Source: Bigelowiella natans CCMP2755 (lineage: Eukaryota > Protista > Cercozoa). Taken from it: DNA of 64,000 nucleotides. The stretch lies in NCBI GenBank assembly GCA_000320545.1, contig ADNK01002596.1:116331-180330 (forward strand), in the 5' to 3' direction. The notes beneath the pieces were generated by a model. That model was not told the DNA's origin. It searched no databases and saw nothing but the letters and a program-made list of their open reading frames with translations. How positions within the stretch are numbered: position 1 is the first letter of the stretch; each line of letters opens with the position of its first letter. The translations under genes and the position numbers were made by a program. This document shows, piece after piece, positions 3,259 to 29,613 of this stretch.

Positions 3259-5122
3259 ATGGAAGAAAATCACTATGTACCGGGAGGTGTCTACGGCACA
3301 CCTGTGGTGCTCGAGGAGGCAAAAGACCAGCATCGTGAAGAAGAACTTTATCAAAAGCTCTTCTACAAACAAGAAGAGGTAGAAGAAATGTAGGATGGAA
3401 ATAAAGTGAATTTTATAAGGTGTACCTTGACACTGTGACTCAATTGCAGATCGAAATTGGAGAGAAACTGGGTGAAGGGAATTTTGCAGCGACATTTTGT
3501 GGAAGAATAAAGGATCTTGGGATCTCAGTGGCCCTAAAAGTCGCGAAGGCATCGGTTCGTAGTTGATATAATCGCTATCGCGTTCAAGCTACTGATACTA
3601 TGTAAATTGAAAAGGTGGATGATGAGAGTATACATGTGGAGATAAGCAATTTTTCCAAGATCGGAAAGCATCGCAATGTGCTCCGGTATATCGGTTTTGT
3701 GATGCTGGTTGATAAGCCATGCTATATGACTGAGCTTTGCTCTTATGGCAATCTTCACGACCTCCATGATTCGGAAAGATTTGATAAAGAGGCTAACTTT
3801 CTGAGAGTGGCGACAGATATATGCTGCGGTCTTGCACATTTACATGCAAAGGGTGTTGTACACCGAGACATTGCATGTAGAAATCTCCTGATGCGGAAAG
3901 ATGGTTCTGTACTGATCGCTGACTACGGTCTAGCTCGTGTAGTAGGCACAGGAGATGAGGCATATTATACCGCAGGGAAAGCTCCGACAGCATGGCCATG
4001 GATGGCACCAGAATCGTTTACCTATCTCGATTCAAAAATCAAACTTGTTAAGGGAAAGTTTACCAAGAAATCCGATGTATATATGCTTGGGGTACGTTAG
4101 ATAGATCGTGTGTGCGTGGAGGCAAAACTAATCTAACTAAAGTCACGGACATATACACTGCCTGCGTATAGTATTTTTGTGTTGTGTGTTTGATTTTTAA
4201 ACTCAAGACTATATTAATTATATCTAAGGTGGCTTTCTGGGAAATGTTAACAAGAGGGAAAAGACCATACGAGGAGAGCACAGGTGGTGTGTCATCAGCA
4301 AGAATCGGAGCTAGGGAGGCTTCGGAAAGAATACGATTAGGATTATTGAAATTATCAACACCCAAAAACGCAACAGTCATACAGAAGACAATTGTGGAGG
4401 CCTGCTTAGCTTTTGATCCAGAGGAACGTCCATCAGCTATGGGGGTGCTCTCAAACGTACTTTACATCAATCCTACCCAAGAACAACTTTCGGAGTGGAA
4501 AGAAAGTTTGGTAAGGAGGAGGAGGAGGAAGAAAATGTTCAAACTAGACGATAAGGTACATTATTATAGTCCGGTAAAAGGCGAGTATGTAAAAACTCGG
4601 AGGAAAATAGTGGAAATCAATTACGACCGTCAGGAGGTCCGATTAGATCGAATGGTGGGAATGCTGCGATTTGATCAAATATCACACCAGCCTCCTCCTC
4701 ATGATAAAGAGGTAAAAGATTTGAGGGGCAGGGAAAGAAAAATAGATTATAATCAGAAATATTGTGGCAATGGTAATGATTACACTAAAGAGGATGGCTC
4801 GAGCCCTATAAAGGTTGCCTCTCTTTCTAATGGAGCAACAAAGACGAAGGATCGGAATTGTCAGCGGAATATACTTCCACCTCACTCCCCTGTACTCATA
4901 AAGTATGAAGATGAAAAAGTTGAGAAAGAGAGAACAGAGACGAATTTTGTCCCCAAAGTTGGAGATTATGTTTTTTTTTTCAGCGCAGCACTTAAGCGAA
5001 TGAGTAAAATAAGAAGGCAAGTTACAAAAGTAGACCTAAATATGCGGATAGCGTGGTTGAAAGGAATGAAAAATAGAAACCCGCTCTCTTTCGACCAACT
5101 CGCACCCAATAACAACTTGTAG
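3259..5122 (+). CDS. Tyrosine kinase / TKL-type protein kinase with C-terminal duplicated SH3/Tudor-like domain
   Basis: Four exons join in phase 0: 3259-3378, 3420-3554, 3615-4091, 4229-5122. Motifs: LGEGNFA (Gly loop), VALK, HRDIACRNLL (catalytic loop, TK-like), DYG (in place of DFG), WPWMAPES, KSDVYMLGVAFWEM, DPEERPS. Confidence 0.9.
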
Positions 5123-16311: not shown

Positions 16312-16351
<40 letters not shown>

Positions 16352-16489
16352 CCCAACTCCAACTTTTAGAGCTTCTTCTTTGGTCTCATAAAGGTCACTA
16401 CTCGTAGGCTATCACTCGCACCGATAGAGAGAAACAAAAATTCTCAATGAGAAATTCTTATTTTTGTCCATACAGGAGAGCGCTGAGTG

Positions 16490-17303
16490 ATGCCGGTAGA
16501 CGAAGTAGTCTCAGTGTCTCCAGTATCAGCAGCACGATCCAGTTGCATCAACACAGATGCTTTGTGTTCGAAAGGGCGAGTTCCAAGCTTGTTTGAAATT
16601 ATAATGAGGTGATGATCACTGCAAATTCATGTCTCAAAATAATGAAAGCTATCTCTTGAGCAATGAAAGAATGATGTCATTGAACAGTAGTGAGTGATTC
16701 GAAGAATATTGCTGGCACTGATACTACATATATGAGGACTAAATGTAATAGAAGAGGGTTTGTGCGATGTGGGTTTAGCGTTTCTTCATCACATATTTAC
16801 TATCACACCCCTAATAATTCTTAGAGCTGTTGGACGACGACCTGACACACTGCTTGAAATTTCTAATGCACATCTCAGTATGATCCCTTCTTTCATTTTG
16901 GAGGTAGTAGTTGTTGTTGTTGTAGTAGTAGTAGGTGCTCAAGTCAAGGGCACAGTGCATCATCTATAAATAAAGGACTACTATTTAAATGATCAAAATA
17001 ATGTGTTGGTCCATTTTATTCAGAGACTAATACGGGAATTCGGATCCCATCCTTTATCGTTAAACCATCTTGAAAAGTAGTACTACTAGTAGTAGCGCAA
17101 TTGGAGATCAGCACAACAAACACACACAAATACCTTCAATGCATCACTGACACGTATTCACATGGATTTCCCCTCTCATATAAGATTTTGTTAGATAAAT
17201 TAATTATATATTACACATACAAAAAAAAGCTCACATCATATACACATGAATATGTTTTTTTCTTTTTTTTAATATGTGCGTGTGCATGCGTGAGTGCGCA
17301 TAT

Positions 17304-17337
<34 letters not shown>

Positions 17338-17735
17338 TGTGCCGTGCCGTGTAGCACTGGGTAGCGTTGGTGGCAAAGCAGCTTATATTTTAATTTACAT
17401 GAGCACGTGGACAAAGTTGTAGTTGTAGTCTCGCTTTTACTATAGAAGATCGTAGAAACTTTCAGGGATCTTAAATGATGATAGATGGCGTGAAGGAGGA
17501 GACGGTTTAACACAAGTATATATTTTGTATTACTGCAGAAGCAGAACCACCAGCAGTAACAGCAGAAATAATATCAAATTAATACTTGTTAAATGTTAAA
17601 GGTTAAGCTGGGTTCCGAATCTTCGATCTATAGTTTTGTCTTCAGCATCGACAGGAGAAGATCATCTGATCGAGCTTTCGCGTCACTCTGAAACTCTTGA
17701 ATCACTCACAATTTCTGGATTAGCGGTAATAGTCT

Positions 17736-17767
<32 letters not shown>

Positions 17768-19101
17768 CTTCTTTATCCACAATCCACTTGAAATGCTAAA
17801 GGTGGGTGGTGATGGACATAGTGCTACTGCTGTTGCTCCGTCATTATCATTCTCTCTAATCATTTTGAGGAGCATGTATTTGAATAGAGTCAAAACCTAC
17901 CTACGACGTGCTTTGCCTACTTAAGACAATTTCCACATCTCCAAATATTGCGGTAGAAGATGATGATTTACTACTACATTAGTCCCCATCACCGCCACCA
18001 CCAGCACATTAGTGTATTATAGCACTTAAAGCGACTACAACCATCTATCTCCTATAGCTACTAGCTATACTACTAATCATGTTGATGATAACATCGATGC
18101 TAAAGTTTTGACAATGAATGGATGGAAAAGATACTGTCTTTTTCCTGCTTGCACAGAATCGAAGGACTTGCAGCAAGTTTTGCGAAAAAGAAAACACGTG
18201 CTGAATTTCTCATCAGTGGTGAGTCTTTTGTTTTATCGTAGACAGAGTTAGAGCAACAACTATATACAACATATATCTTGTTGTGCTGTGTGTGCTGTTC
18301 TGTTTATGCAGGAGGAAGAAGACGGACAGCAGAAGAAAGAGGAGGAGGAGTAGTCAATATTGACTCCTACTGCTGCTGGAAATTGGCTGCTGGAATCTCT
18401 GAAGTGAGTGAGTGATGATGATAGTGATGATTGATAGTGATGATGATGATGATGTGGTGGTCAAGTGAAGAAGGATAAAATTGATCATCTACTATTTGTG
18501 AAAGTCACTTGGCGACCTGAAGAAATTGCACACGTTGGAATTGCCCAAATGTCAATTGAGAAAGGGGTACTAGTTGATTGAGTAGTAGTAGTGGTGACCT
18601 GTAGCCAATTAGTAAGTACATGAGGAGATGAAAATGATGATGATGATGATTATAATGATTGGTGATGGTGATGATGGTGATGTTACTGGCTATGATGATG
18701 TTTTTGCTACGCGATGTCGTTCATGGTTTACTGCTGCATTTCGGTTTGTTGCAAAAAGAAATATTATACTATTCAGATTGTCTTCCGTTGATGTTGATTC
18801 GTCGTTATTGCAGATTTGTTCATTATGATACATGTATATAATATAAATATGTGTGTATGTTCTTCTGGTTCGTGCAACAATGAAAAGAGATTTGAACGGA
18901 ATAGCTGCACATGTGAGGAGACTAGAGGTCCTTAATCTCAATGGAAATAATGGGTACTACTGCTACTGCTACTACTTACTACTACTATTCTGTAATGATG
19001 CATATATTGCTTGCTTCTACTGCTAGGGACAAGAATGTAGTCACTTAAGCATAATCACCTATCAATAGCACCTTTTTTTAACTGCTGGCTGTTGTTATCG
19101 A

Positions 19102-19134
<33 letters not shown>

Positions 19135-19304
19135 GTTTGGCCAAGACAGATATATTCCCTTTGCTCGAAACTAATGGGAACACTCTCAGAGTATTTAAAA
19201 TCAGTGAAGTCCCAATAGATTCAATCGATGCACTTCTTTGTGCCCAACACCTGGAAGTACTCGACTTATCATGGACACTGGTTGATATTATGCATGCATG
19301 AATC

Positions 19305-19347
<43 letters not shown>

Positions 19348-20613
19348 GTATACATATATCTCTGTGTGTGTGACGAATGAAGCAATTGCAGTAGCATAGA
19401 CGGATGCATAGCTCATCTAGATCGTTTATAAACCGCCCTCTATTATATGCGAGAGAGTTATTTTTGTGAATAATGATCGGTGGAAAAACCATGGGAAAAA
19501 AAGGTATCCTTCTTATCGTTTAATGCGCATCTTTTGTTCGTTTAGATAACAGATGAGGGTATTTGTGGCATTGCGCACCTAAAAAAGCTTAGACATCTAG
19601 ACATTTCCGGAACGGCACTTTCAGATGCTGGTAGTACTTATAAACATATTATTATTTAGTGTTGCATGGTAGGTACTCTCCATACAGTTCTTGATTAAAG
19701 TGTTGATAAAGTTTCTCTGTTTGCTGTGTCATTTCTCTTGAATGTAGTTACATACACATAATATATGTAATGTTCGATTGGTTTTTGTTCGTTCCTCCTG
19801 CTGCTGCTGCTACTTTCTTTCTTTCTTTCTTTTATATCAAACCATCAGGTCTAGCTTCCTTCTCTAGTATATGGAATGAGCTACTAAGTATGGATATCTC
19901 TGCTTGTGTCGGCATAAAGGGGGAATTTAAGGATATGATTCTGGATCATACTGTGGATGATAATGATGATGATGATGATGATTTTGAAGGAGCCAATAAC
20001 CAAGATAATTACAATGATGCAGAGGAGAAGAATGAGATGAAGGGAGTGCTGCTCTCGTGTGATGAACCATCATCGTCGCCATCTTCAATGTCGAAACGAA
20101 AGAAGAAAATGACGTCTGGAATGTCATCATCATCATCATCATCAACGCAACCATCTTCACCGTCATTTTCAAATTTAACGCATTTAGTAGCCTCACAGAC
20201 AGGACTTACCGACGAAGGATGCCACCGATTTGTATCAAGTATGGAGACAGCGGCGAGTTAAATAATAGCAGAGAAATGCCACCACCACCTGTCATACATA
20301 AATGAATAGCATTTCGATGATGATAATGATGATAATAAATGACTAAATCTATACAGGATTTCCATTTCTCCAAACGCTTTACATTGGGTCCAATCATTTC
20401 GTCAGTGATATAGGCATCTCTTATATTGTATCGTCGCTTCGTCGTCTCAGACACCTTGATATCTCAAATAATAGAAGGATAACAGATACTTCCATTCACC
20501 TACTTGTGGCTCTGCGACAGCTGACGTCCCTCGACGCATCAAATACAAAGCTGTTATTCTTGAATTCTACCGTTCTCAATTTTGCGAACATGTAGTAGAG
20601 GAAGTAGTAGTAA

Positions 20614-20645
<32 letters not shown>

Positions 20646-22333
20646 TGTCGGTATCTATGTCACTTCTTCCTACCAATGATGATGTACCTTGCTGCTGCTG
20701 CTGCTGCTTATGTAGGTGGTAGTGTGGGATGGATTGTTAGTTGAGCCTCTTCTTGTTGTTGTTGTTCTTCTTCTACTTTATATGCAGGTACAACCTAACA
20801 ACATTACGGATACAGAACTTGGATACTTTGTCCAAATTTAACCTTAGAACTAAGATAGAGAGCATCCTTAAGATGAGGAGGAGTGCTCAATCGGAGGCAG
20901 AAATTTTAGAGGCATCGTCATCATCATCATCATCATCTTCTTCTTCTTCTTCTTCTTCCCCATCATCATTTAAGAGTAGTAGTAATATGTCATTACGACC
21001 GATGCCACTTTCCATTTATTTCGGTTCTACACACGAAGCGACTAGTCTACTACGATATCACCAGAATACCTTTCCTACTCCTAATCCGCGAGCGCTTCGT
21101 CGCAGCAGTCGTGATTTGTCATTCCCCCCATCGCCATCGTCATTATCATCACCTAGGGAAGAAAATAAGAATTGTTCCTCCTCTACCAAGCTACATCTTT
21201 CTACTGTTAGACAACCACCCAAGATTCCGACTACAACCTCCTTCCCCTTGTGTTCATCATCCATGGTTAGTACACTGAAAGGGGACGGTCGTAAGCAACG
21301 ACCTCCCCCCACACTGCTTCTAAAAAATGCTACTGTCCCTTCCGCTACCACTGCTGCTGTATTATCTCGTTTCAATAACAGCAAGCCAAAACACTACCAA
21401 TACTCAATTAGCGAGCTCCTTTGCATGAGACATGCTCATCCTTCATGCCATAGACGACCATCGAAACTACCTCTCATCCCTGGAATTACAACATCGGTGA
21501 CAAAGATGGAGATGAAGTATAGTTACTATTCCTGCAACTACCAGGAGGAAGAGAAAAAGGAAGGGGAAAAACAGCTGCAGCATGAAATTATGGACCAAAG
21601 ATCTAAAAACGTGCGCAACGATGTTGATAATGTTAACGATGACATCACAATATATGATGGTAAAGGAGAATTGGGTGCTTGTGCGTCATCACCGGCATCA
21701 TCACCATCATCATTTTCTTTTTGTTATGGCCCACGATACTTCAAAAGAGAAGAAAGGGGAGAGAAAGTAGGAGAAAAAGCAGCAACCGATACACCAGTAA
21801 TTGAAACAGAACAGCAGCAACAGCAGTTATCATCATTCCCATCGAGAAATAATCCATGGGAAATGCGACGGCAAGAGCGAAGAAGAAGGACACCACAAGA
21901 AAATTGCAACGAACGAATACCAACAGCTAGTAAAACGTTTCACAGCTCATCGACATCTTCATCATTGTCATCCAGATCACTAAGGAGAGCAAAAAGAGGG
22001 AAAAAGAAGATGGGATTGAAAGAGCAATTTGATGAAGCTTGTCGAGTTACTGTCGTTGATTATCATAATGGCAAGGCCACATCTGTCTTTGTGCGCAAAG
22101 ATAGTAGTGTAAGTATCAAAGGTGGGAATGATGGCAGAAGTCACATGAGTAAAAAGAAAAAGAAGAGGATATCTGCTACGAAATCGGATCCGAGGGTTTT
22201 TATCACCGATTCTGAACACAAAGAAAGAATAGCACATTTCAACAATGCGAATCGTAATGGAAGGCGACACGGTGGAAATAAGGCAGGTAGCAATAGAAAA
22301 TGGAAGAAAAAGTCATTGACTGGCTGCGGTTGA
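16490..22333 (+). CDS. Leucine-rich repeat (RNI-like/AMN1-like) protein with long disordered C-terminal tail
   Basis: ATG at 16490 (MPVDEV...RVPSLFEIIMR). Later exons encode LRRs: WVPNLRSIVLS, FPHLQILR, LKKLHTLELPKC, VRRLEVLNLNGN, QHLEVLDLSWT, ITDEGICGIAHLKKLRHLDISGT, FPFLQTLYIGSNHFVSDIGI, LRRLRHLDISNNRRITDTSI, LRQLTSLDASNT. The last exon is ORF 20741-22333 from ~20789. Confidence 0.85.
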
Positions 22334-22339
22334 ACTCAA

Positions 22340-24100
22340 CAGATGGATGCGTCATTTCCATTGCTCTGTGCCACTTTTGTGGTCTGAGAATTTCACAATG
22401 ATGAAAATTCACAGTTTGTCGCACGTGCACACTTGAGGTTTGCGGGTCGAGAAAGAGAGAAGGGCCAGAGAGAGTTGAGAGCAAACATTGCAAATTTGCC
22501 TGTGCAGAAAATCAACAACAAAATTCTTGGCATGCTAGCATGCGCAACCAATGGTGAACAAGCGTTGAGCAAGCGTTCCTACATTTCTGCAGGCAGACGA
22601 CACGCATTGTCGCGCAAACATTGAACACAGTCTGATGGAGGGAAACAAGGAATGGACAATTGATTGCAAAAATTCCAACCAAAGTGTCGTTTTTCATTTC
22701 ATTGTGTGTGGCACTCATTGGCTCATGAACTGGTGTGGAGTCCAGAGCGATGTGCGCTGTTTTGAAAGGCCAATTGTGTCGCATTCCTCCCTGCGCGCAA
22801 AAGTGCAAAACAAGTGACACAGCAGTTTTCTGTTTTCTGTCTGTCTCGCCAGCTGGTCTGTGTTCAAGAATGGAGCTGGGCACAAATGATTTTTTTTGTT
22901 TTGAAACACGTCATTTGTTTTTTCTTGTGACATTCTGAACAAGTGTTCGATTTGAACAAACAATGCCCACGTGTCGCAAAACCAGTGTTCGATTCGTTCA
23001 AACAATGTTCGAACAACAAGAAGAATGTTTGCAAACAATCTGAAATGTTTTCGAACGGTCACTGAAACAACTGACCAATCCCCTTCACCTTTGATTGGGG
23101 TTGCACATTGCTAGATTGCACGTGTGGGCTTTCATTGTTTGTGTGTGTGGCCTTGCACGCTTGTGCGCAAGTGCTTTGACCTTGCATGCCAGCATGCTTG
23201 CTAGCTTGTGCGCTTTTGCGCTGCACTTGGCATTTTGTCGTGCTCTCAGGCTCACACTTGTGCGCTGCACTTGCACTTTGTCATGCCCACACGTGCTCAC
23301 ATGCTCACCATGCCATCCCCTTCACCCGCCTTCACCCACGATTGGGGTCCAGGGTTGCTGCCTGCACACGCACGTGCACCACCACCTCCAATTTTTGCAC
23401 GACACTCGCACGACACTTTGCAAAAGTGCAAGTGCAGTCTGCACTTGGCTAGTTGGGCTTTCATTGTTTGCACAGCCTTGCGTGCTTGTGCGCTGCACTT
23501 GCACACAACGTCCCCAGCTTTTGCGGAGACATTGCCCCCATTGCTGGGTTGATTTGCAATCAGAAGCACGAGCTTCACGCCAACCACAACGTCCCCGGTG
23601 TTTGCTGTTGCGGAGACATTGCCCGACTGGATGGCACAAATTGGAGGAGGACACATGTCATCCTGACGGGATTCATCCGGGATGAATCTCGTGCACAGAT
23701 CCGAACGTCCTTCACACGGCAACCAAGTCACCGGTGGCTGGCCCCCACCGGTGAACAGGAATGTGGTTCAGGGATGAGGGGAAAAGCCACCCTCGCAACC
23801 GAAAACTCCCCCCGCCCATCACCACTTCGGCGGATGCAACTTTGAATCTTGAGTGCAGGTTCAAACACCCTTGATTTGGCAACCGAGCTAGCGAGTCACC
23901 GGTGGCTGGGGCGACATGTCTGTCCATCCCACCAGTGAACGAGAATGTGATTCATGGGTAGGAGGAAAAGCCACCCTGGTGACCGAAAACCCCCGCTAGC
24001 CCGCCTAGCCGCCCATCACCGCATCGCGCGCCGCATCGCAATTGCCGCATCGGCGATGAAGGGCACCAACTGCACCAACCAGATGACAATCAAACAATTT
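22340..24100. other. RY-alternation-rich intergenic spacer containing internal direct repeats
   Basis: TGCA/GCATGC-rich sequence immediately after the LRR stop codon. Contains repeated motifs (gggctttcattgtttg x2; cttgtgcgctgcacttgca x2; gcggagacattgccc x2). Confidence 0.55.
23718..23995 (+). repeat. Imperfect direct repeat, two ~90-100 bp copies
   Basis: agtcaccggtggctgg...cccaccRgtgaac..gaatgtg.ttca.gg...ggaaaagccaccct.g..accgaaaac at ~23726-23815 and ~23894-23995. Confidence 0.75.
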
Positions 24101-25073: not shown

Positions 25074-28000
25074 ATGGAATCGTTGAATAAGACTATGAGA
25101 GACATGGGAAACAATAAATCTAGCACAGATAGAAACAGCGATCAAAGACAAGTGGCCGAACAATCACATTTAAGTGCGCAGGTAATAGAAATTCTTTGAG
25201 GAATTGTACTGTATGAAATTAAGAAAGAGGATCTAGGTGGATTTAGAACGAGACTTGAAACCAGAGTGATGATTAATCTGAGTTGACTTCGTAGTCGTGG
25301 GGCAGAATTTCTCCATTGCTGAAATCTTAATGAAACTATTATTCGCGATCTCCCATATTTACCTCAAGGTGCACACTGAGAGTGATAGGGGCCTTCCGCA
25401 AAAGCGTGCATCAGCCAATTCGTCCACTGCTGCTTCAGATGCAGCATCCTCCACACTATTCCTATCAACCCTTCTTGAACAACAAAATTCTCCAATATTG
25501 GATGAATCATCTCTGAGTCTTCTCAGCAGTCTAAAGACCCTTACTTCTGACGAAAAAATTTCGCAGGGTGGGGTTGGTAAGCAGGTCGATAAAATAAAGC
25601 AACTTGTCTCAAGCATACAGACAAGTTGCCAGAGACTGAACGACAGAGAAGCTGCTCTGAAAAAGGCTACGCAACTACTGTTAAAAAGTACTTAAAAAAC
25701 CTAAATAAATATCATCATACAAGTAAAACAACGAATGTATTGAGAACTCTATTGGTATCATACAATAATCTCAGTTCAACAAGAAAAAGCGAAGATTCGA
25801 GAGGCAATGGACAGCAAGCACAGTCTCGAGGTGATTCCAGTTCGCACTCAATTTTTAAGGGAGATTTTTTCAGTTATTCCATATCTCCTCAACTTACCCG
25901 ATGCTTTCTTTTAAAAAGCGGACAATGATTGCTTGTGTAACACTTGTTCCTTCATCAAAATAAAATGAATTTTGCGAAACAGTTGACACGAGGAAAATCT
26001 TGAAATTTTCCTTATCTTCCACACGCTGCTTCAAAAATTTAACATTTTCTTAAATCTGTCAGAAGGGGGAATATAGCAATGAAGAAGCTGCTTTGCAAAA
26101 GCAAAAGTTGCAAAAAGAGGTTCGCATAATTTTCTGAATATTCATCTGCTATTTGTTCTCTAAAATTTCATAATCATCGATTTTTTTGTCTTTTCCCCAC
26201 CGTTATGTGCTACTAGTTGACCAGTAAAAACAGTCAATTTGTTGTTGTTGTTGTCTTCTCCTTTGATTTTTGGTTTGGGAATACTTGGTACGTTTTTGCA
26301 GGATCTGCGACGCAGTGCACTGCTCCAACAACTCTACCAAGGGGTTAATAGTGTTGTTGCGGTTGCTGCACAAGGAGAGAACATAACCACCAACCATAGC
26401 ACCCGAGCCTTAAAGGAAAGAGAGCAGCACACACGAGAGGAATTAGAGAAGTTGAAGGAGCAAGTCGAGCAATACAAAAGGCTCGTGGAGGAAGTCAAAC
26501 AACAGGTTATATAATGCAGGATAGAACCTCTCTCTTTTCTTGACTCGCTAATTGATTGGTTTTGGACATTTATGTGAAGGTCGCTCCTGCATCCCCCCCC
26601 AAAGAAAAGGAGGTAGTATCAAAGGCTAGGCATGATCAGAAGCAAGCTGAGATCGAGCGCTTGGCCAAAGATGTCGAAATATGTAAGGACGAGCTACAGC
26701 AGCTGCTCGCCACGATTGGTATAAATGGAAGCATGGATCATGGAATACAGCTCGAATAAGAAACCACCAACCACACCATGTGCACTGTGTATTTATTCTC
26801 TTGGCGGAAATTCTTGTTTGATGTTGCTGACCCTTACACAGCTCAAGAACAGTCGATGATGCAGCAAGTATACGACTTGCAAAATAAGCTCAAGAAGGAT
26901 AAACAACAGTTTGGACAGATGCAACAACAGCTGGTAAAATTAAAAGGGGTGATAACAATAGCTTTGGAACACTAGGATGATGATGATGAGAGCACGTATC
27001 TGTACTGGAAGTTTTTTTTTTAACGTTCATGAGCGCCGATATGATCGATATTGTGGTTGTTCCCACCCTTTGTCCTTGATTGTCTACATTACTAACATTA
27101 GATGATTGTCTCCATTATCAACATTAGACAAAGGAGCAGAACAAAGTTAAAGAAGGAAAAAAAATGAACAAGAAACTCCGTGCTCAAATAGATCGGGATC
27201 GTAGTTTTCTCGATAAAGAGAGGCAGAACCATAAGAAGAGGGAAGAGGATCTGAAAAATGAACGGGCTAAGATCAAGAAGGCTATGGAGGAGATGCAGAA
27301 TGGCCGCAAAGGAGTTGAACATGATCGAGCTCAGCTGAAAAGGGAACACAAAAAGCTGGATCGTAAGAAGGACGAGGTTGCAGATGAGACAAAAAAGCTT
27401 GAGGTAGAACGCAAAAAGATGCAGAAAGAAAAGGAACGTCTCAAGAAGGAAGTCCAGAAGGCCCAAAATGCCAAGGACAAAATAGAGAAAGAGAAACAGA
27501 GAGCAGACCAAGAGGCCTCCAATGCACAAAAGCGAAAAGAAAAGATAATGGCGGATATCCAAAAGGCGATCGTGGAGGAGGAAAGGAAGCTCAAGGTTGT
27601 CGCTGATGAATCGTGTATTTTATAGCGATATAGTGATGGGAACAGATTACTTTTTCATAATACACATTTAACTACTACAGAGCATTATGTCTGATTTTCG
27701 CCGCCACCTACGTACTACTCTGTTAATTCCATCTTATGATGTGATGACATTGTACGATCAGTTTGTACATATTTTCTACTTCTTCTCACTGATAATATAC
27801 AGACAGCGTAGTAAATATTGTCTTACCCCCCCCCCCTTTGATGAAAACTCAGGAATTGAAGGAGATAGAGAAAACCAAAGCTCAACTCAAGGGCGAACTC
27901 GAGCAGCTCAAAAAAGAGAAGCGCAAGATGGAAAAGCGGCGGAGTAAGTCACCAGGTCATCATAATACCACTGGTAATGGTGCAGAAGGAGGTGGTAAGC

Positions 28001-28857
28001 AAAGCAGCAGCGATGAGTTAGGAGTAGGTGGTGCCTCTTCAGAGACAAGTATTGCTTTGAGGCAGAAACTCCTACAGCTTGAGAATGAGAATAAAGTTCT
28101 AAAGAAAAAGATAGAGGCATCATCATCACCGGCCTCTTTCTCATCAGCACTCGGTCCATCATCGACTTCAACCTCCTACCATCAGCAGGATGTTGCGTGG
28201 CCTAATCGAGGAGTTAGCGGCAGCAAAGGGGGGGGTGAGAGCAAGGTTGGTGGGAGTAGCGGTACTTCCAGTGGACCTTCTGGTGGTGGTAGTAGTAATA
28301 CCATCAACACGTTCTCTTTTTCGCAGAATTCATGGCTGCGGAGCATGAAATCTTCGATGATGAACCCTGTCAAGGACACAATCAACATCCCCCGATTTGC
28401 ATGGCCGAGACCTGGCATGAAAGAGCATCACTCTTCTCATCATCACCAGCATTCCTCCCATCACCACCCTTCGTCTCTAAGTAGTAGTACTCATGGAAGT
28501 TCTTCTAACTCATCCTCTCATCATCACCATCATCAAATCCATCACCACCCTGCTCATCATGGTGGTCTTTCTGCCACTTCCACCTTTGGTGGTCCACCTG
28601 GATTTGCTGGTACCTCATCATCCCAACCAATGGGCGGCCTAATGTTTGCGCAACGAGGCAAGAAGGTGATGGCACGTTATCGTGGTGATGATCAATGGTA
28701 TGATGCTGAAATCAAGGAGGTCATCCTGAACGGCGCAAAGGGCCCTCGATACATCGTTAAGTTTCAAGGCTATGCAGGCAAGGAGGAGGTGAGTGCGGCA
28801 GATATACGTCCAAAACAACAGCGTCATCATCAGCAGGATGGAAATAGTGACAACAAC

Positions 28858-28895
<38 letters not shown>

Positions 28896-29613
28896 GTCTG
28901 GAGCAAGTGGGACAGGAAGCAGTGCTGGTGTAGTCGTATCAGGTGGTGGCGGTGGTGGTGGAGGGAGTAACAACACCACTTCATCATCCTCACATCCCAG
29001 CAGTCAACCTAATGGCCACCATCACCAACTTCATCATCATCATTCCAGCAGCAGCAGCAGTGGTGGTGGTGGTGGTGGTTCTAGTGTTGTTGGTGTTGGT
29101 CAGCACGGCGCCAACACGCATCATCATCATCATCATCATCACCTTAATCATACCACTCACCATCCTTCGCTTCGCACCCAATCGTCTTCTCAATGGGCGT
29201 CTTTGGTCAAGAACGATCGAAGCTCGTCACACCATGGTGGCAGCGTTTGGGGTATGAGCGCTAGCATGAAACCGTCTACGGCAATTGGAAGAGTAGGTGG
29301 TGGGGTATTGAATGGACTTAGTAGCCATACTTCTTCTCTCATGAAACAGCAACCACAGACGTCAGTTGGTAGCGGAAGTTCCTCAGTGGGAGGGGGAGGA
29401 GTCGGAGGAGGGGCTACAGCGAAAATGGGGGGCAGCAGTCGCGGTGGTGGTGGTGGTAGGAGTGGGGGTGGGGGGGGTACTAGTGGAGCGGGTGGTTTCT
29501 ATGCCCCGCACCATCTCCATCGTCATCATCATCCTCATCATACTTCAAACCTTGAAAACGGAGGAGGAGGAGCCGGAGGAGGGGGTAGCACTGTGGGAGG
29601 GAAACAAGGATGA
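25074..29613 (+). CDS. Coiled-coil protein with C-terminal Tudor domain in His/Gly/Ser-rich low-complexity sequence
   Basis: Multiple K/E/Q-rich coiled-coil exons (25369-, ~26060-, ~26300-, ~26580-, ~26840-, 27164-, 27838-). Tudor signature KKVMARYRGDDQWYDAEIKEV...YIVKFQGYAGKEEVSAADIRP at ~28660-28810. The start codon is uncertain. Confidence 0.75.

Follow-up and report, generated by a model that had tools for sequence, protein, structure and literature searches.

Analysis of a 64,000-nucleotide stretch of Bigelowiella natans DNA (hereafter the window) revealed an LRR protein of 1040 amino acids that carries, in its tail, a motif resembling human 4E-BP1 in both of its eIF4E-binding elements. 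The presence of this 4E-BP1-like motif in the B. natans LRR protein is confirmed, and the results support the conclusion that it exceeds chance within the B. natans genome and is under purifying selection. Because all residue classes of both motifs are present, with a linker one residue longer than that of 4E-BP1, the motif is read here as a bipartite 4E-BP1-type eIF4E-docking module on an FBXL-type LRR scaffold, a reading made from sequence and given a probability of about 0.55. The 1040-aa protein is probably a new eIF4E-docking scaffold with a CERES-like layout.

The motif and its match to human 4E-BP1

Translation of window positions 21401-21493 on the forward strand gives YSISELLCMRHAHPSCHRRPSKLPLIPGITT, exactly the peptide reported in the first-pass annotation of this DNA. 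That annotation had also claimed three elements in common with human 4E-BP1, namely the canonical YxxxxL-phi motif, an arginine at +9 and a downstream LPxIPG[VI]T motif, at the same spacing except for an offset of one residue; this match holds, and the human sequence used for it agrees with PDB entries 5bxv, 4ued and 8rch. The human reference stretch comprises residues 51-84 of 4E-BP1 and is identical in chains 5bxv_B, 4ued_B and 8rch_Z. Counted from the tyrosine, leucine at +5, a hydrophobic residue at +6 and arginine at +9 are common to human 4E-BP1 and the LRR protein, whereas the distance from this tyrosine to the first leucine of LPxIPG[VI]T is +21 in human 4E-BP1 and +22 in the LRR protein (LPLIPGITT).

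Analysis of 120 vertebrate 4E-BPs, collected with a 70-residue human query, showed LPxIPG[VI]T to be invariant with its third position free, and the spacing from the tyrosine to its first leucine to be 21 in 118 of 118 proteins. The full bipartite motif of the LRR protein extends from Y731 to T760. YxxxxL-phi occurs once in the 1040 amino acids, and the two-part pattern occurs once in the six-frame translation of the window. The positions of the gene and of the parts of the motif are listed in Table 1.

Table 1. Features of the LRR gene and of its 4E-BP1-like motif, in window coordinates.
Feature	Position	Strand	Description and basis
CDS	16490..22333	+	one gene, 14 exons, 1040 aa; transcript contigs, splice joints, ORF reconstruction, MMETSP ORFs P0125/P0126
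Exons 1-5	16490-16608, 16825-16903, 17024-17076, 17602-17725, 17888-17952	+	
Exons 6-10	18157-18218, 18312-18403, 18505-18566, 18888-18953, 19136-19280	+	
Exons 11-14	19546-19630, 19849-20238, 20357-20591, 20788-22333	+	
LRR exons	16700..20870	+	~14-15 cysteine-containing FBXL-type LRRs, ~aa 80-555; Pfam LRR families, Atlas neighbours, repeat listing
Intron 12	20239..20356	+	118 nt; when retained, in-frame stop and 454-aa LRR-only product; retained in L001/L002, P0125
Intron 13	20592..20787	+	196 nt; when retained, ATG|TAG stop after NFANM and 526-aa LRR-only product without tail; P0126
Last exon	20788..22333	+	final LRR (YNLTTLRIQNLDTL...) and 490-aa Ser/Pro/basic-rich tail, predicted disordered; AF2
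Conserved block	21389..21529	+	47 codons, KHYQYSISELLCMRHAHPSCHRRPSKLPLIPGITTSVTKMEMKYSYY, top conservation within tail; comparison with L004
Canonical motif	21401..21421	+	YSISELL (YxxxxL-phi), Y731-L737, putative eIF4E site; residue match with 4E-BP1
Arg +9	21428-21430	+	of the canonical motif
Linker	21422..21466	+	CMRHAHPSCHRRPSK, 15 residues, 4E-BP1 linker plus one residue, without Ser/Thr-Pro site
RRPS	21452-21463	+	in linker, conserved, immediately N-terminal to second motif; basophilic-kinase-type site by inference only
Non-canonical motif	21467..21490	+	4E-BP1-type, LPLIPGIT (human LPTIPGVT); sequence match, vertebrate 4E-BP profile aligns there
Stop codon	22331-22333	+	TGA of the 1040-aa ORF

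Gene structure and transcripts

In the public annotation this locus is represented by two separate models, a 238-aa LRR fragment (jgi/Bigna1/80515; P0127) and a 448-aa tail (P0002). Our analysis supports the conclusion that both models belong to a single 1040-aa gene, which corrects the annotation, and RNA contigs back the 14-exon structure. All 13 introns have GT..AG borders. Two JGI samples provided three transcript contigs with the motif-bearing ORF (L001-L003), and L001 aligns to window positions 16328-22649 in twelve blocks with 99.2-100% identity. Contigs from four runs, each belonging to a different study, show ten GT..AG joints, including 17952|18157 and 20238|20357, the kind of these runs being recorded as 'RNA?', a guess. 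The introns at both of the named joints are retained in L001, and their removal gives a single 1040-aa ORF; the ORF derived from the genome (14 exons, 13 introns) differs from the transcript ORF at two residues. Since each single contig keeps some intron, the 1040-aa product is put together from overlapping pieces of evidence. The LRR part shares a 90% cluster with EukProt EP00466_Bigelowiella_natans_P018686 (jgi/Bigna1/80515).

When one of the last two introns stays in the transcript, the product ends before the tail. The MMETSP protein P0125 (454 aa) ends within retained intron 12, and P0126 (526 aa, MMETSP) has intron 12 spliced and is terminated by the opening codon of retained intron 13. 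The spliced 20238|20357 joint is present in all four runs, with a contig depth above that of the retained form in all four, and intron 13 is spliced in L001 and L002. Intron-retention noise is common in B. natans, and retention of introns 12 and 13 could be such noise or a switch that takes off the tail. The placement of LRRs and motif in one protein by the first-pass annotation holds for the spliced RNA, in which both lie in the same frame and the last LRR crosses the final exon junction, but LRR-only transcripts exist as well.

LRR domain and tail

Pfam families LRR_4, LRR_6 and LRR_1 were found above cut-off in the LRR part of the protein and LRR_Zer-1 and LRR_At5g56370 more weakly, and the Atlas neighbours of this part bear LRR_6 and LRR_FBXL15. 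The last exon opens with an LRR unit and therefore the repeat domain spans the final junction into the tail exon. An acidic (DDNDDDDDD), Ser/Lys-rich insert of ~90 aa (aa ~345-425; window 19950-20140) breaks the LRR array in exon 12.

A single-sequence AF2 model of the LRR half had a mean pLDDT of 42, too poor for a fold search. For the last exon the mean pLDDT was 41, in agreement with the disordered surroundings that had earlier been claimed for the motif, and a short helix was predicted with low confidence on ISELLCMR. This predicted helix is compatible with one that forms on binding and is not evidence for such a helix.

Close to the C-terminus there is another conserved block (aa ~934-1017; 22010..22261, forward strand; GLKEQFDEACRVTVVDYHNGKATSVFVRKD...) with Lys/Arg runs on both flanks. 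It is 60% identical to P0003/L004 (L004:1020-1325) and was modelled by AF2 as a weak three-strand sheet; no Pfam family was found for it.

Conservation and selection

An exhaustive HMMER search with the 448-aa tail against 1.84 billion representatives returned only the tail itself and P0003, an 84-aa C-terminal fragment of an orthologue. The contig of P0003, L004, comes from another JGI sample and encodes an orthologous tail in an ORF without a gene call, and for this reason protein databases under-report the orthologue. Word-indexed protein searches with the tail region found only the tail itself and, with an 87-aa piece, no protein sharing three 5-residue words, and the ESM Atlas gave no usable neighbour for the motif piece. 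An alignment-based metagenome scan gave no match. Scanning of metagenome contigs with the back-translated pattern of PSKLPLIPGIT identified one B. natans-like contig, L005, which is 97% identical.

The first-pass annotation had proposed that the motif be checked in orthologues, and it proved to be identical in L005 and retained in L004. The latter is a diverged orthologue (61% identity to the tail overall, dS about 0.5) and its agreement with the B. natans sequence reads KHYQY[ST]ISELL.MRH.HPSC.RRPSKLPLIPGITT.VT.M.MKYSY, the canonical half in L004 being YTISELL. The best 30-aa window of the tail is the motif block, with 26 of 30 residues identical to L004. Nei-Gojobori estimates against L004 gave dN 0.086, dS 0.57 and dN/dS 0.15 for the 47-codon motif block and dN 0.285, dS 0.505 and dN/dS 0.56 for the rest of the tail, this being one pairwise comparison with a single informative diverged orthologue. 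Purifying selection on the motif block is clearly stronger than on its surroundings. Between positions 990 and 1025 of L004 the reading frame shifts from that of the motif ORF (frame 1, end 999) to that of the C-terminal block (frame 3), which may be an assembly error or a real frameshift.

Chance expectation and profile scores

The combined two-part pattern is expected 1e-11 to 4e-11 times per residue, that is, ~3e-5 to 4e-4 times per 1e7-residue proteome. This frequency is negligible for one genome, but over a scan of ~250,000 windows roughly 0.1-1 chance matches are expected, and it is because of this expectation across the whole scan that the conservation result carries weight.

A profile of the 120 vertebrate 4E-BPs, run with filters off, scored 14.9 bits for the protein and 15.0 bits for the orthologue (E 2e-6, two targets). 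When 1316 six-frame ORFs of the window were searched with the vertebrate 4E-BP profile, the tail ORF came first with 16.3 bits (E 4.9e-4; next 0.15), a score reached by 0 of 20,000 shuffles of the tail. The alignment spans the non-canonical half only (P.LPxIPGxT, ~12 residues). A profile of the 33-position core gave 6.7 bits and was equalled by 22 of 20,000 shuffles. Built from vertebrate sequences only, the 4E-BP profile is too narrow for the canonical half to add to the score.

Relation to the 4E-BP family

The LRR protein is not a member of the 4E-BP family, since it has neither a Pfam match nor TOR sites or a TOS motif and is ~9 times the size of a 4E-BP, which is a small (about 100-120 aa) stand-alone disordered protein. 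A comparison with Pfam eIF_4EBP (PF05456) had been suggested as a check of the motif, and Pfam hmmscan gave no match to this family at E<=10, whether the query was the tail, short pieces of it or the orthologue; HMMER filters do hide weak matches. No match was found in the PDB by phmmer with a 70-aa piece, and pairwise BLASTP against the human peptide gave no alignment because the pieces are too short. The many SP/TP sites noted at first for the region amount to seven across the 490-aa tail, all of them outside the module; no Ser/Thr-Pro site lies in or beside the module, the nearest being at aa 647 and aa 827, and no TOS-like motif (F-x-[MLIV]-[DE]-[ILMVF]) occurs in the protein. What stands of the original description as an LRR-4E-BP fusion is thus a real motif in frame with the LRRs, but by family criteria the protein is not a 4E-BP. 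A fused 4E-BP gene and a convergent short motif cannot be told apart.

Proposed function and alternative readings

The 4E-BPs are a textbook switch between growth signalling and cap-dependent translation. Through their canonical helix they attach to the dorsal face of eIF4E, a face also bound by eIF4G; their non-canonical motifs contact a lateral surface left free by eIF4G, and in this way 4E-BPs can displace eIF4G (Igreja et al., PMC4164784). In 4E-BP1/2 the affinity for eIF4E is increased ~1000-fold by the IPGVTS/T motif, which reportedly lacks conservation across animals (PMC4164784). By analogy, YSISELL..R of the LRR protein would fold as a helix on the dorsal eIF4E surface, the site of eIF4G, and LPLIPGIT, past the 15-residue linker, would pack on the lateral surface used by 4E-BPs and unused by eIF4G. 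Our proposal is that such docking on two surfaces would lead to tight binding of eIF4E and hence to competition with eIF4G, and that the LRR solenoid, perhaps together with the basic C-terminal block, would recruit further partners to eIF4E. Control might be exerted by retention of the last two introns, which would remove the tail, and perhaps through the conserved RRPS in the linker (S751). Proline-directed phosphorylation of the TOR type is an unlikely means of control because Ser/Thr-Pro sites are absent. The proposal is open to either direction of effect: translational repression would be one option only, and plant CERES, the nearest known protein with LRRs and a 4E-binding site, promotes translation (PMC12758896).

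The similarity to 4E-BP1 may instead be a chance match from a very large scan, the conserved block binding another partner (a kinase, a phosphatase or an adaptor) and having nothing to do with eIF4E. Consistent with this, Pfam, PDB phmmer and BLASTP gave no significant match, the profile match covers ~12 residues only, the pattern frequency implies about 0.1-1 chance match per ~250,000 windows, and the conserved block reaches past the 4E-BP-like part, to HYQ upstream and VT.M.MKYSY downstream. Chance, however, leaves unexplained why two independent motifs should be correctly ordered and spaced; all residue classes of both 4E-BP1 motifs, at near-equal spacing, are kept in the orthologue, and purifying selection is centred exactly on the motif block. 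We therefore consider a chance origin doubtful, though worth serious attention. A different objection is that the tail is normally not joined to the LRRs, so that LRR-only isoforms would be the main products and the motif ORF would be separate or rarely translated. The split JGI/EukProt models (80515, 238 aa; P0002, 448 aa), the termination of P0125 and P0126 in retained introns and the retention of intron 12 in L001 and L002 all fit this objection, which appears very unlikely given that 20238|20357 is spliced in all four runs at a contig depth above the retained form, that the last junction is spliced in L001/L002 with an LRR unit crossing it in frame, and that the tail stays open for ~490 codons with dN/dS < 1 in two species.

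Binding to eIF4E could also serve a different end, the protein being a CERES-like alternative scaffold that replaces eIF4G and promotes or selects translation; it might even be a CERES homologue gained via the green-algal endosymbiont. The plastid of B. natans is green-algal-derived, which would agree with such a route, the LRRs are of the FBXL/cysteine-containing class, and the long tail has a basic conserved end that could hold other factors or RNA. The layout is also the same, ~15 LRRs followed by a 4E-binding site (PMC12758896). Against this, CERES is described as plant-specific, with the canonical site alone mentioned (PMC12758896, PMC13518413), and the IPGVT-type lateral motif is a hallmark of competitive 4E-BPs (PMC4164784). 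This reading, which is drawn by analogy, seems unlikely to us, and a bipartite 4E-BP1-type docking module on an LRR scaffold is preferred.

Wider meaning

Outside animals 4E-BPs are patchy, being absent from plants, nematodes and dinoflagellates (PMC6027434). Our search of the literature found no description of a 4E-BP for Rhizaria, and the papers that name both Bigelowiella and 4E-BP describe none in B. natans. The presence in an algal LRR protein of a nearly exact copy under selection would mean either that the bipartite core is much older and more modular than thought or that the two-surface solution evolved twice. It would also provide a concrete candidate for the control of eIF4E in a chlorarachniophyte and extend the design of LRRs followed by a 4E-binding site, so far that of plant CERES only, to another supergroup. 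As a tentative and still rather doubtful conjecture, the 4E-BP core (canonical helix plus IPGVT-type motif) may be ancient and portable, and in chlorarachniophytes may sit on an FBXL-type LRR scaffold as a non-plant counterpart of CERES, turned on and off by retention of the last two introns and maybe tuned through RRPS instead of TOR. On this conjecture, Rhizaria would gain their first described 4E-BP1-type bipartite eIF4E binder, and no earlier binder of this type would be known in combination with a ligand-binding repeat domain.

Other features of the window

Two further regions of the window, both on the forward strand, were recorded. An intron-split protein kinase domain (PK_Tyr_Ser-Thr, E 6e-33) is encoded at 3615-5122, and the tail of this kinase contains two similar segments of approx. 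35 residues (…KVHYYSPVKGEYVKTRRKIVEINYD… and …KVGDYVFFFSAALKRMSKIRRQVTKVD…). At 27164-29613 two ORFs lie in succession, the first Lys/Glu-rich and coiled-coil-like, the second 591 aa long and rich in His/Gly/Ser/Asn, with an ordered-looking island (…VMARYRGDDQWYDAEIKEVILNGAKGPRYIVKFQGY…) that is Tudor-like by eye; no Pfam family was found for the ORFs of this region.

Comparison with known eIF4E-binding proteins

The vertebrate 4E-BP1/2/3 proteins (PF05456) share with the LRR protein the YxxxxL-phi motif, the arginine at +9, LPxIPG[VI]T ~21-22 residues on and a disordered region. They differ from it in length, ~118 aa against 1040 aa with 14-15 LRRs, and in the linker, which in the LRR protein is one residue longer and unrelated in sequence. 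Moreover, the LRR protein has no equivalents of the Ser/Thr-Pro sites T37/T46/S65/T70 and no TOS-like motif.

Cup, 4E-T and Mextli resemble the LRR protein in being large and multi-part, with a canonical motif, a linker and a non-canonical motif for the dorsal and lateral faces of eIF4E (PMC4164784, PMC4573856). Their non-canonical motifs, however, are unrelated to IPGVT in sequence, and they have no LRRs.

In CERES a canonical 4E-binding site comes after 15 LRRs, and the protein binds eIF4E (PMC12758896, PMC13518413). It assembles cap complexes that lack eIF4G, and its effect on translation is positive (PMC12758896, PMC13518413, bioRxiv 10.1101/2023.02.16.528822). Compared by description, Arabidopsis CERES (At4g23840) and the B. 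natans protein agree in an N-terminal and central array of LRRs, 15 in the former and ~14-15 in the latter (aa 80-555), with a canonical site after it, which in B. natans is YSISELL at aa 731. Unlike CERES, a 67-kDa protein restricted by description to plants, the LRR protein belongs to a rhizarian alga and has a 490-aa tail with a 4E-BP1-type lateral motif. Judged by description, plant CERES is the closest known layout that combines LRRs with a 4E-binding site.
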